In this document: positions 41,801 to 59,800 of the stretch, one piece after another
How the letters are laid out: each line of letters begins with the position of its first letter
How positions within the stretch are numbered: position 1 is the first letter of the stretch
NCBI GenBank assembly: GCA_964234715.1
Contig: OZ174280.1
Source: Podarcis melisellensis
Lineage: Eukaryota
Length of the DNA stretch: 64,000 nt
Reading direction: 5' to 3' (one strand)
Program-made: the position numbers and the translations under genes
The notes under the pieces: generated by a model
The model's input: only the letters and a program-made list of their open reading frames with translations
What the model was told of the DNA's origin: nothing
Database searches by the model: none

Positions 41801-44800
41801 ATTTTTTATGTTCATCCTTATTCAAGGTGGGATGTGGTTATTTTACATTGTTGGGTTTTTTGTGGATGAACACTTCTAGTATATTTGTTTTGTTTTAATG
41901 CATTTTTATTGATGTTGTTTGTTATCCCTGTAAATCACTTTGGAACTCCTTTTATGTGAAGCAATTCCTAAACTAAATGCACCAAATCTCATCTACTCAT
42001 TTGACACATAGATTATACTGCCAGGATTTCCAAGCAGGTCCTTTTTCTTTGTGATTCTACACATACCCCAAATTTTCAAGACCACCCCATCTGCAGTATG
42101 GAGGTTGCTGATGGCCAAAGGTGCTCCTTGAAATGTTGGGCAGGAAGGGGGCAACATTTCCACAACTAAATGGCTTTGGAGATGTAGCTGAAATGTTCAG
42201 TAGTGCCAGTCCAGCAAAAACAAACAAGGACATTGAGCTGGTTTTGTTTTTACAAAGAGCCAGATGAATAATATGCAGGCTCTTGTCCCACCTCATAAGG
42301 ATTGGCACAAGCAATAACTGTGTTAATGGGCTCCCCCTGCTCATCTTTTTCATCAGGGTCTTCAGGCACAGAGCTGGCGCAACTGCAGCGGTTACACATG
42401 GCAGAGATGGCTCAGCTGCATGCAGAGATTGGCAGCCTGAGACATGACACAGAGAGGATGAAGCTAAGACATCCCAAGAGGGGGTCACCACTACCCCGGC
42501 TGCCGCCTCCTATAGCTCCACCCCTGCCACCTCCTCCCCCTCTTCTTGGATTGCCTGACCCCACCTTTCCAGCTAGTAACATGGTTAGTGCCCCTTTAAC
42601 TTGGGGAACCTCAGGCAACAGTCATACTGAATATCTGCTTTTGGAGTGGAAATAGTATAAAAATACTTCTATAGTTTTAATAATTCAGAGCTATCATCCT
42701 GTGTGGCTGGCTCTCTCCATATCTGTGTTCACTCCAGAAAGATGCATCCAGTGGTTCATGCTCTGCTTGTTGCAAATATGCTGACCATTTTGCTCAGGGG
42801 TGAATGATTTATCTGAAGCTGTTGAGTTATATTCTTAAGATTTTCCTTGAGGCAGCAAGCCTCATTATTCCCCCTAAGACTGATGCTGGTATTTCCTTTT
42901 TCTATTCTTTGGTAATGTAAAACAGCTCTCATATTTCTGCCTGCTATAGGACCCCATGAGAGCGTCTGCCACAGCTATGAGCCAGTACTTCCTGGACCCT
43001 TCTGATGCCCTGGGACCAGCGCCATATGATCCGGCGTATGTCATTTCTATTACCTGTATTATTCTGGGTTGAGCTAGTGGGAGGGCAGCATATGTTTTTT
43101 TCCTGTCTCATTCTTGCATGGAGTATTTGTAGACACTGCCATGTAAAGTGAAGATGTTCATTTTTTCCATCCTAATACCATTCCTAGGGATGCATTTTGG
43201 AATCTAGCCTGTTGAGTCTTCTAGACTGCAGCCAGCTCATAGAAAATAGCTGTTGTTAAGAGTTTGGGGTGGTGGGAGATAGGCTGTATGCCTAAACCCT
43301 CCTAATTCCCGGAAGTGCCTAGAACCCCTGGAATTTCACTCAGCTTGGGGTGGCATGCAAACTGTGTTAACTATTACATGAGTGTGACAATTATCATCTC
43401 TCTGCAGGTCTGGCTTTGTGATATTCTATGATTTTCTTTTGGGCCTGGATCCCACATTCTATCAAGTCTGCCTGGTCTCTGGCCTATTCCGCAATGGGCA
43501 AGAGCTGGGCAAGCCCACCCCACTGCCCGTTGTCTCCTCTGATATGGGTCAATACCCACAGTATGTGACTGATGGGCAAAGAGGGTGCTGCGCCATCTTA
43601 GCAGCTAGGCAACCAGTCCCAAGGTGAGTTTCAGTGGCTTTTGCCATAACATCTCATCTCTTCTGTCCCCGGGTCATTATCTGGGCAGACATTCCCAGTT
43701 GGCAAAGTTTTTTGTTTTCATTGTTTCAATGTATATAGTGTACAGCAAGATAATGCTCAAGACAAATGCAATGATAAGTGGTAGAAGATTCCTTTCTAAA
43801 AAACAATGCAAAGAAAACCATCTATCATGAACTGCTTTTATCATGACCCTTTCGAAGAGCCAGGGCCCTATCATCTTGGCATGGGAACCACTCACTCTGG
43901 GGATTAGTATGAGCTTCAGATTGCCATAAAATAGGCTGTTTCAGTCCAGTTTTGCACACGCCAGATTCTTGTCTGTTCTTAGTTAGAGGTCATATACGTT
44001 AGTGTCATATAGAAGATAGTCTTCTTTGCCAAACCCCCATGTGAAACATGGCTACAGTGAACTCTGTATTCAGATTTGTAGAGAAAAAGGTAGGCTTGTA
44101 TGTATTACCTTTGTCTGTTCTTGCTTTTCAGAGTCCTTCCTTCAACCACCATCACCCTCATAACTGAGCTTCAAGCATCTGGAGGCTTTGATGCTTATGG
44201 ACTGGAGATCCAGAATCTGGCCCCCAGGGGGTGGGCCAAAATCAACATCTTTGACCATCTACATCAAGTGATGTGTGGGCGCTGGAAGATCCCCATCCGA
44301 GTGCTTCCTATGAAGCCAAGCCTTACTCCAGAACAGTTGAATGGTGTGCCCCAGGTGAGGACCTTTAGCAAGGGTCAGTGCAGAGTGCCCAGAAAATTAT
44401 TTCTTGAACAACATGAAGGGAGAGTGTCGTGCTCGTGCTCTCAGGAGACTCATGGTGAACCATTAACATTGGCACTTAACACTGAGCTTCTACTTTCTGC
44501 ATTGTGCTGAGTGTGATTTGAGACAGATTCAATCTCAGGCCTCATTGACTGAATAGAAACATTCCTGGAATGATGGCTGTTGTGTTGACTCAATACACAA
44601 CAATGGCTGTTCCTCAGAACACCTTGGCCAGATCAAGATAAATTAGTCCAACATCGTCTTCAGTTATTTTTGTATCTGTTTTAATCCCAACCAGACCACA
44701 CCTTGTTTTTTCCTCACAGCTGGGCAAAGCAGAGCTGTACTTGCGACTAGTGAATGCAAGAGATGCTGACATGCAGTCAATGGCAGAGATTCATCCAGGC

Positions 44801-56800: not shown

Positions 56801-59800
56801 CCTGTACACAACAGGTGGCTCAGCCTTTCCTTTCAGAACCTGCAACTTGTTTTTCAGACCTGTCCCCACAGAGTTTACCATGAATATACAGCCATTATTA
56901 TTCACCTGTACCAAGGTGTGGTGAATCCTGCCCAATGTGCCTCGGGTGAAAAAGAATGTCAAGCAGCACAAAGAAGAGTCATGCTAAAAGGGGAACAGTT
57001 ACATTACACTCAGAAAAGTGGGGCATGGACAGCTCTTCATGTGTTTTCCAGAGGTTACTGCAACACTGGCATTTACCAACTGCCCTTATACCAGGGGGCT
57101 CCCAGTCAGGTATAGTTAACTTAACCAACCAGCTAAAAGTTAGACATACATGCCAATTTTCTTGCAAAAACAATCAAATTCCAGCAGCTGGGCAGGGGCA
57201 CACACACATATATTCTGTACAATGTTTCCCTGCATCACCTGTATATCACCATTCTGTCAAGCTGAAAGTTATCCACTTCCCCACTTTTGAGCTTTATGTG
57301 AATGCAGCATCAGTTAAGAACTGATGGCTCATCCCCACAGAATTCAGTACTTTCTGAAGTCCCTACTTGTGTACGCTTAATGCCTGCAAATATCTTAGCA
57401 ATGACAAAGGGTACAAATGGCAACTAGTTCTCCCACCTTTTGGAGGTGGTGATGGTGCAAAGCAATGAACCAGTGCCTCTAACTGCTAAGCATTCCCCAC
57501 CCCATCTTTGGCTTAAGTGTCACCAGCTCTTGACCCACTTGTTTTACACACTACTATAATTTAGTCCAAAGTCAGCAATCAGTTTCTAATTTCAAGATGT
57601 TGTTTGGGGTGTGTACAAAATTAGTAAGCTTTACAATGCTACTTTGTATTGTTTTGGAACACTTCTAACTATTTCTCTCACTTAAGGAATCTCTTGCAGT
57701 AGTCTACTAAAAGAATGCTGCAAAGAAACTGTAGGTGGTTTGTTCTTTTCTGGTTCAAGGTTTGTTCTTTCCTTAACAGATCATCCTGGCTTCCTTATCT
57801 GAAGGGAAATGCAGCAGCATTATGAAGAGCATGCTCCAAAAGAAAGAGGTATGAGACTAGTTAAGCATAGAGCAGTAGCTTCACAAAGCTTATCCAAGAA
57901 GTAAAACGGTGAAGTAAGGGGAACACTTGCAATCCTTTTCTAGATTGTATTATACAGGGTAGTAACAAAAACTGATGCAAAAGGTAGACCACACAAATCC
58001 CAATTTTCTCAAACACCACTGCAAGTGCAGAAAGTTCCAAGGAGCATGGCTGGCAAAGATTTTTGGGAGCAAGACAGAAGGTGGTTTGAAACATCAGCCC
58101 CACCATCATACAAATGGATTCCAAAATGTGTGTTTGTGCTGCAGAGAGATCCTCCCTGAAGACTGCCAAGTCAGATAAATCAATTTACAAGACTGTTTCT
58201 TTATAATGTAATCTTGAAATTGAAAATTTACCTGAACCAGTGGTTCTAAAATGTTTTTCTTTTGGCCACACTTCCAGAATAAAAACTTGCTCACGCCATA
58301 CCAAATTGTTTGATAATACATTGAGAGAAAAGAAACTCAAATTAGTTTTTTTTGTAAATATTTATCCATAGTCTGCAAATAATTTTTTTTTTTGATACTA
58401 CTGTATACTACACTGAAATGTTTAAATATTTGATTGTCCTTGAATCTTCTTGCCACACCCTTTGAGAACCACTGCTTTACAGATTCATTTGGGTGCAATG
58501 GGGAACATTTATGTGGTCTACTAAATCTGGAGTAGAAGGCTCCAGTATAGAGTAAGGAGGCACTTGGATATTCTGTAATTACCGTATTTTTCGCTCTATA
58601 ACACGCACCCGACCATAACACGCACATAGTTTTTAGAGGAGGAAAATCCATAGGCATGCCACCCGTAGGCATTCCCTCCATAACACGCACAGACATTTCC
58701 CCTTACTTTCTAGGAGGAAAAGAGTGTTATGGTGCAAAAAATAGGGTATATGAAAACCTCAACAGCCTCAGGTATGACAGGTGCCTGCAATCTATGTAAG
58801 CCCTACTTTATCCCCAACGTTTCACCATTAATCTTGTTCAACAATCACACATATAAGAACGTACTTAATGCTACAGTTTGAAACTTCCAGATCCAGTTGG
58901 TGCCAGGTGCATCTGTGGTTGTGCGTATAGCAGATGGAAGATGGGATGAACTCAGATATACATCAGGGGTACGTATACTAGCTAAGTGAATCTAATCATC
59001 ACAAACTTTTCATTCCACCCAGGAAAACAAAAGGATGAGCATACTAATTAACCATCCACTGGAGAAAACCAAAAGCAATCTCACTTTCATGTTTACCATT
59101 TATCAATTTTCTGTGCAGCCAAATTGTAAAACAGAGCCAGGTGACTTGTTTATAGTGGATTGTCAGAAATCACGTATACTAAAAAGGTTACCAGTAACTG
59201 TTCAGAGCACAAACTAACCACACATTAGATCATCACGTCCTAGCTGACCTTGTCATTTGTTTCAGAGTATTGATCAATCTTATCTGCCAGAGACAACAGA
59301 TCTGTACAATAAGGAACCCTCTGGAAGAAAAATTGCAGAATTAATGTTGCAGGAGACTTCAAGAAAACAGGTAAAATTGGGCTATAGCCCTACTTATGAA
59401 TGGAACAATTTGTCAACTAGCAACAGCCACAGTGCAGCTCTATGACATAAATGAAATTATAATTTAACTGCAAGGTTTGAAGTACACCCATTCTAGTGAG
59501 ATCAGAACAAATGGAACTTGCTACATACATTTCCTGACCGAAAGCTTTGCTCCACATTCTCCATACTGAATGAACCTATGCTGCCAATTCTTGTAGTAGA
59601 CCAGCAAGAAGCATATAAGCGGCACACAAAGCACTACCCAAACCATTCTGCGTTCTAAATCTTATTAATAATCCAAAAACTGAGAGAACAAGGTACAAGA
59701 TCTACTACAGAAGCCACAAACAGAAAACTCATTCAAATTGTGTCCAAAAGTAAGATTCAGGAGCCTGGCTAAAGGAACTTTAAAGACTGAATCTTCCTTT

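Follow-up and report, generated by a model that had tools for sequence, protein, structure and literature searches.

C2 domains of ciliary proteins have been catalogued, with the remark that the ancient ones among them are devoid of calcium-binding ability (PMC3495828). CCDC17, which is used together with FOXJ1 as a marker of ciliated cells (PMC13096173), is mentioned 0 times in that 2012 catalogue, and no description of a four-C2 architecture of CCDC17 was found in the searchable literature. Here, a stretch of 64,000 nucleotides from Podarcis melisellensis (contig OZ174280.1 of GenBank assembly GCA_964234715.1; hereafter the window) is analysed. It is vertebrate genomic DNA without runs of N, and comparison with known proteins indicates that its exons between 43.4 and 59.0 kb are the C-terminal two thirds of the long CCDC17 isoform of a squamate reptile. 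An earlier inspection of the letters (the sequence-only reading) had proposed that this region hides a four-fold repeat of a divergent C2-like domain. Overall, we hold with high confidence that the locus encodes a long CCDC17 with four homologous C2-type beta-sandwich domains. Databases already foreshadow this array in part: the first unit has its own family, CCDC17_C, and one protist protein carries a PI3K-type C2 label.

Compared to the closest described systems, the CCDC17 units differ in several respects. The PI3K-type C2 domain (class I, II and III PI 3-kinases; PF00792) occurs once in PI3K and four times in tandem in CCDC17, where neither a kinase nor a helical domain follows; the CCDC17 units stay below the Pfam cut-off, the best echo being 25.6 bits against 26.4 in a Xenopus orthologue. 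The DHR-1 C2 domain of DOCK proteins (Dock180, 3l4c; DOCK8, 7cly) binds PI(3,4,5)P3 via a basic pocket, whereas the CCDC17 units have no conserved basic excess, and the DOCK-C2 model of Pfam gave a single match, to one of the 34 sequences of unit 4 (E 0.0011). AIDA (2qz5, 2qzq; PF14186) has a single C2 domain with only 9% identity, and Aida_C2 matched one of 34 unit 1 sequences (E 0.085). The ciliary and centriolar proteins with multiple C2 domains (CEP120, C2CD3, NPHP4 and RPGRIP1L) resemble CCDC17 in architecture rather than by a demonstrated relationship in sequence. Ferlins and extended synaptotagmins carry transmembrane anchors and calcium-binding aspartate clusters, neither of which is evident in CCDC17.

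Identity of the gene

An exon of the window (44169-44354, 62 amino acids) was used as a probe against 1.84 billion representative proteins with phmmer. This resulted in 93 protein matches with a top identity of 87% and one matched stretch each, comprising fragments, forms of about 600-700 amino acids and forms of 1,230-1,570 amino acids. As a single-exon search returns one stretch per protein, the repeat is undetectable in this way. The nearest long protein, P0004 from the gecko Sphaerodactylus townsendi, counts 1,233 amino acids with an incomplete N-terminus and is named coiled-coil domain-containing protein 17. When P0004, P0002 (cobra) and P0029 (toad) were aligned to the window by tblastn, 18 to 25 collinear segments were obtained between positions 35858 and 59382; P0004 accounts for 25 of these, each 57-86% identical. 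This whole-protein collinear similarity to CCDC17-named proteins with PF28454 and PF28455 places the gene in the CCDC17 orthologue group, these two Pfam memberships being precomputed annotations of the orthologues and not scores of the window exons. A Pfam scan of 18 exon-sized open stretches in the window revealed nothing relevant. In total, the squamate gene has approximately 30 exons on the plus strand (35858-59382), with splice sites set by a GT/AG chooser and a reading-phase check in which 12-20 codons were joined on either side of each junction.

Four homologous units

The spans proposed by the sequence-only reading coincide with groups of splice-bounded exons, all on the plus strand. 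Of the 16 peptides it quoted, 15 were recovered as contiguous stretches in a six-frame scan at the places where they had been put. Unit 1 (C2-1, 43408-44830) consists of three exons: 43408-43623 (acceptor tgcag/GTC, donor AAG/gtgagt) encodes a 12-residue peptide (43412-43447) and the first strands, 44132-44354 encodes RGWAKINIF (44226-44252) and an 11-residue motif (44268-44300), and 44720-44830 encodes the last strand AELYLRL (44729-44749). The probe exon omits the first 37 bases of the second of these. Unit 2 (C2-2, 49049-51290) is built from five exons, namely 49049-49190 with a 13-residue first strand (49101-49139), 49372-49464, 50249-50456 with AAWAVLRLI (50396-50422), 50564-50670 with a 14-residue motif (50599-50640) and 51150-51290 with the last strand ATLRLHV (51192-51212).

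Unit 3 (C2-3, 52143 to about 54290) takes up four exons and the start of a fifth. The first (52143-52297) holds a 13-residue peptide at 52203-52241, the second (52604-52724) corresponds to the start of the sub-threshold Pfam PI3K_C2 match of an orthologue, the third (53522-53638) encodes IGWAALNVF (53561-53587) and the fourth (54050-54147) a 14-residue motif (54056-54097). The fifth (54240-54452) opens with the last strand ATLLVRL (54253-54273) and continues into a conserved three-helix insert. The rest of this insert lies in exon 54810-54984, of which the last codons (YGIK) open the first strand of unit 4 (C2-4, about 54970 to 58968). The 13-residue first-strand peptide of this unit is the 16th quoted peptide, present and interrupted by an intron, with GIK as the end of one exon (54984) and the remaining ten residues opening the next (55874). 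Besides this exon end, unit 4 has four exons: 55874-56056, 56858-57109 with GAWTALHVF (57020-57046) and a 14-residue motif (57059-57100), 57780-57848 with a helical hairpin preceding the last strand, and 58891-58968 with the last strand ASVVVRI (58909-58929).

For a profile comparison, 52 long orthologues were aligned and sliced by P0004 residues 205-392 (unit 1), 485-690 (unit 2), 705-885 (unit 3) and 980-1185 (unit 4). All four units are linked by hhalign, with probabilities of 88.8% for units 1 and 2 (E 2.5e-6), 81.6% for units 1 and 3 (E 1.1e-5), 93.6% for units 1 and 4 (E 2.1e-7), 92.7% for units 2 and 3 (E 4.2e-7), 83.2% for units 2 and 4 (E 8.8e-6) and 96.2% for units 3 and 4 (E 2.2e-9). 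These alignments cover 120-154 columns, except for the pair of units 2 and 4 with 60 columns only, and the identity between units is 14-21%. For the controls (the linker at residues 886-979, the N-terminal 200 residues and reversed profiles), the probability did not exceed 13% and the score did not exceed 27. The similarity between profiles is thus significant, above the controls and in a single register, as an internal repeat would show.

This register is the one that had been proposed by eye. The first strands GFVVFYDF, LGFILDRV, GFDLYIDG and GVKFALNR are co-aligned by hhalign, and so are the GW/AW strands, the G-x3-L-x-L strands and the last strands of the type A-x-L-x-V-R. When hidden Markov models (HMMs) of the units were run against the 52 whole proteins, they cross-matched the other units and almost nothing else: unit 1 matched unit 4 with up to 28.5 bits in 48 of the 52 and unit 2 matched unit 3 with up to 20.9 bits in 50. 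The profiles therefore identify the four units as homologous, with a common register of an h-x-h-x-D first strand, a G/A-W strand, a G-x3-L-x-L strand and an A-x-L-x-V-R last strand. The word 'hidden' is a fair description of the repeat, since no Pfam C2 model reaches its threshold and a profile-profile comparison is needed to make it visible.

Predicted fold and place among C2 domains

AlphaFold2 was run on two parts of the gecko orthologue P0004, using alignments of 50 and 51 orthologues. Model A (residues 205-700, units 1 and 2) has a predicted local distance difference test score (pLDDT) of 77.3 and a predicted template modelling score (pTM) of 0.51; the pLDDT exceeds 90 over most of both domains, and the proline-rich linker comes out as disordered. 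Model B (residues 700-1233, units 3 and 4) has a pLDDT of 86.6 and a pTM of 0.84, with three helices inserted between units 3 and 4 and further helices after unit 4. Each unit is modelled with high confidence as an antiparallel beta-sandwich with eight main strands that superposes on solved C2 domains, and its best structural matches are C2 domains only, both in Foldseek and after the Foldseek hits were aligned anew, as the sequence-only reading had expected. A Foldseek search against the PDB returned DOCK5, the DHR-1 domain of Dock180, C2 domains of PI3K, the AIDA C2 and ferlins, with E values from 1e-9 to 1e-5. Through an orthologue that is 57-86% identical per exon, these models assign a C2 fold to every unit of the window.

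A different view would be that the units are generic beta-sandwiches (immunoglobulin-like, ASH/MSP or jelly-roll) which owe their C2 label to a common strand arrangement. In two exhaustive scans of 48,161 representative chains, independent of Foldseek, all 50 top rows were C2 domains, superposed over 110-150 residues (most of each target domain) with a root-mean-square deviation of 2.4-4.3, so we reject this view and regard it as scarcely credible. In addition, the only families that recur below the Pfam thresholds are PI3K_C2, C2, DOCK-C2 and Aida_C2. PI3K_C2 appears in this way in 6 of 34 members for unit 1, 0 of 34 for unit 2, 12 of 34 for unit 3 and 5 of 34 for unit 4, and the C2 model in 4 of 34 for unit 3. 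Matches of the unit profiles to the PDB sequences of p190RhoGAP and ASA dehydrogenase were dismissed as chance.

As to the subgroup, the sequence-only reading had pointed to calcium-independent C2 folds of the PI3K-C2, DOCK-C2, B9 and ciliary groups. PI3K-C2 and DOCK-C2, along with AIDA, do lead for units 1 to 3, while unit 4 falls nearer to the C2 domains of ferlins and phospholipase C (PLC). For unit 3, the best structural matches are Dock180 (Z 10.0), AIDA (9.7), DOCK8 (9.6) and PI3KC2-alpha (9.2); for unit 4, they are the C2A domains of myoferlin (10.4, 118 of 129 residues) and otoferlin (10.2), followed by PLC-beta3 (10.1), with Z values probably lowered for these two units by the use of two-domain models of an orthologue. 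The C2 domain of NPHP4 came up solely by language model, as a neighbour of unit 1, which we treat as a lead. According to UniRef, the Blepharisma protein is a 'C2 PI3K-type domain-containing protein', and its Pfam echo falls in unit 4. The proposed GW...F...G...L.L signature is present in the C2 sequence of p110alpha (2enq). The profile alignment of unit 1 to 2enq is itself non-significant (E 0.84); in it, the W...LFD...SG motif aligns with a stretch of 22 residues, in agreement with both the structural match and the signature.

The differences between these neighbours raise the question of whether the units were shuffled in from different C2 subfamilies, in which case all four would be C2 domains with a distant homology and 'four-fold repeat' would overstate their kinship. 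The best structural neighbours are AIDA and PI3K for unit 1, DOCK DHR-1 for unit 2 and ferlin- or PLC-type domains for unit 4; the signature is shared with p110alpha and so is not private to CCDC17, and the identity between units is low. However, a Z gap below 1 does not separate one C2 subfamily from another, and the links between units by hhalign (82-96%, near full length) lie far above any match of a unit to a Pfam C2 model, all of which are sub-threshold. Shuffling is therefore considered unlikely; the higher scores between units are indirect evidence that they may have arisen by duplication within this gene.

Conserved acidic columns in the units are single and scattered, with no D-x-D motif seen when loops were placed by secondary structure rather than by superposition. 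An example is P0004 position 797 (exon 53522-53638), where most orthologues have Asp, the gecko has Ser and the window has Asn. From these scattered acidic positions without D-x-D, we infer that the C2 units may be calcium-independent.

The insert between units 3 and 4 counts about 95 amino acids (P0004 886-979, i.e. 54274-54452 and 54810 to about 54960 of the window). It is well conserved and, in the model of the whole C-terminal half, its three helices pack against both C2-3 and C2-4. Chains 9nw3_3A, 9ijj_k and 7som_F of the ciliary central apparatus, which align structurally as tandem C2 domains, were rejected as orthologues as they have no sequence similarity.

Long and short isoforms

Transcript-like contigs from four public runs of related organisms were placed on 44600-49600; such contigs give no expression levels. 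The runs were read as transcripts because their joints are of the GT..AG type. The joint 44830>45977, which connects the last exon of unit 1 to a proline-rich linker exon (45977-46134), is found in three runs. In run X1, the joints 46134>48690, 48731>49049 and 49190>49372, all GT..AG, link the exons of unit 1 to those of unit 2. They pass through an in-frame micro-exon of 42 nucleotides (48690-48731) that encodes a basic stretch of 13 residues. This micro-exon is known only from the contig joints of X1, having been missed by tblastn.

Contigs in X1, X2 and X9 continue through the donor at 46134, after which the frame ends at a TGA (46136-46138). Three elements overlap at 46127-46138, i.e. an AATAAA (46127-46132), the donor AAG/GTGAGA (exon end at 46134) and the in-frame TGA. 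This site looks like a switch between the long isoform and a short, mammal-like one. As the contigs display both donor use and read-through at 46134, both isoforms seem to exist in this lineage, the short one stopping at the same point as the mammalian proteins.

The same read-through could be expected if CCDC17 ended at 46138 as in mammals, with 49049-58968 being a separate downstream gene and the long protein an annotation fusion. Many annotations indeed list a 'CCDC17' of approximately 650-700 amino acids and a separate 'uncharacterized protein LOC...' of 680-805 amino acids that corresponds to units 2-4, among others in Pelobates fuscus (P0030 and P0142, on contigs of equal length), Conger, Amia, Pristis, Xenopus laevis (ccdc17.L), Rana and Dendrobates. 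Against a separate gene, the X1 joints 46134>48690>49049>49372 tie the linker exon to unit 2, the reading frames are phase-compatible, and the parts follow in this order within one long protein in amphioxus, an annelid, a nemertean, a cnidarian, a sponge and ciliate-like sequences. We consider two genes very improbable; the split annotations probably represent one locus that was divided by annotation or by the short isoform.

Within the long intron, each of the four runs shows a jump in contig depth at 47606-47780, with a maximum of 127 in X6. Many of the contigs there end with unrelated loose ends, which would be expected of an abundant small transcript or a dispersed repeat.

Distribution and age

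Residues 460-1233 of P0004 (units 2-4 and the tail) were used as a query for the distribution of the downstream units, which resulted in 93 matching proteins. Among vertebrates, these are found in squamates, turtles, alligator, amphibians, ray-finned fishes and a sawfish. Matches in invertebrates come from amphioxus, a bivalve, an annelid, a nemertean, an acoel, a flatworm, Nematostella and a sponge. Beyond the animals, the ciliate Blepharisma and relatives and two chytrid fungi are represented. No mammal or bird is present among the 93, the search having covered proteins and not mammalian genomes.

In the precomputed Pfam annotation, the long forms have both PF28454 and PF28455 (CCDC17_C in Pfam 38.1), proteins that start at unit 1 have PF28455 only, and proteins consisting of units 2-4 only have neither. 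Unit 1 is therefore treated in databases as a separate family, and units 2-4 are not modelled at all.

Annotations of short forms (577-695 amino acids) exist for opossum, rabbit, Anolis, a frog, a lungfish, a ray, lampreys and teleosts; in Anolis, Pelobates and opossum, the short form stops within the homologue of exon 45977-46134. The suggestion that mammals keep only the first domain fits the annotated proteins, with those of opossum (577-619 amino acids) and rabbit (631 amino acids) ending in the exon after unit 1. Short forms are not restricted to mammals, being annotated in lizard, frog, lampreys and teleosts as well.

HMMs restricted to vertebrate sequences detect each of the four units in proteins of cnidarian, sponge, acoel, nemertean, annelid and amphioxus origin. 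In eight ciliate-like (Blepharisma-like) proteins, they detect units 1, 3 and 4, mostly with E values between 1e-8 and 1e-35, the weakest being 1e-3 for unit 1 of P0167 and 1e-8 for unit 4 of P0163. Based on these profile matches, the four-domain layout is conserved across animals and is likely to be present in ciliates.

Several observations weigh against a four-C2 CCDC17 as set out here. At the level of sequence, no unit reaches the gathering threshold of the Pfam C2 clan (PF00168, PF00792, PF14429, PF14186), the unit profiles have no significant match among PDB sequences, and unit 2 gives no C2 echo at all in Pfam among its 34 members. The modelled structures are those of the gecko orthologue P0004 and not of the window's own spliced protein. 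The units carry almost no net charge (medians from -2 to +2.5), which gives no sign of a polybasic lipid-binding face, and lipid binding is therefore not claimed. The RNA runs come from related organisms and their RNA label was guessed. Finally, unit 2 was not recovered in the ciliate-like proteins by the vertebrate HMMs, and a profile of the middle region of these proteins aligns to vertebrate unit 2 over 39 columns with a probability of 62% (hhalign).

More tentatively, and at slightly less than even weight, we suggest that CCDC17 was ancestrally a scaffold of approximately 1,400 amino acids that combined a zinc finger and a coiled coil with four C2 domains, linked to motile cilia and dating from near the last eukaryotic common ancestor. 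According to this scenario, it was missed by the catalogues of ciliary C2 domains because the well-studied mammalian protein is a truncated isoform with one C2 domain; mammals would have fixed an older isoform generated by alternative polyadenylation, thereby losing three C2 domains.

Other features of the locus

Upstream of unit 1, the N-terminal exons of CCDC17 extend from 35858 to 43035 on the plus strand and include a C2H2-like zinc-finger exon, coiled-coil exons and a proline-rich exon, as mapped by tblastn with P0002, P0004 and P0029 and by splice choice. The final N-terminal exon (42950-43035) encodes an 11-residue peptide. The first coding exon (35858-36046) encodes the zinc finger, with the pattern ...C..C...F.....L..H...FC in orthologues; it is kept from ciliate-like proteins to vertebrates and lies below the Pfam zf-C2H2 threshold (E about 0.03). 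Downstream of unit 4, the last exon mapped (59266-59382, plus strand; tblastn, splice choice and model) encodes the C-terminal helical tail. Intronic CA/GT dinucleotide microsatellites are located at 40381-40420 and 55790-55830, where they translate as runs of THTHTH and CVCVCV.

Function and significance

From N- to C-terminus, the predicted protein has a C2H2-like zinc finger, a coiled coil, a proline-rich linker and four C2 domains, with the three-helix insert between the third and the fourth and a helical tail at the end. The coiled coil may form a dimeric scaffold. The array of C2 domains, in which no aspartate cluster of the calcium type is evident, might serve to dock the protein at the base or shaft of motile cilia, either on the surface of a membrane or on a protein partner. 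Only one docking module would then be retained in the short isoform and in the mammalian protein. All 93 proteins matching units 2-4 are confined to lineages with cilia or flagella, and a ciliary role for CCDC17 is somewhat favoured. As to the docking target, we regard protein and lipid as about equally likely.

As a marker of multiciliated cells, CCDC17 is in wide use, but it has no known function or described domain, and all that Pfam does is name unit 1 CCDC17_C. The conservation of four C2 domains in animals, three of which are clear in ciliate-like proteins, points to docking on membranes or ciliary structures. The four-unit protein also explains why several genome annotations split this locus into a 'CCDC17' and an 'uncharacterized LOC' gene. 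For the choice of a model organism, the full protein is to be found in frog, fish, amphioxus and sea anemone and a truncated form in mouse and human. CCDC17 would add to the set of ancient, calcium-independent C2 proteins associated with cilia.

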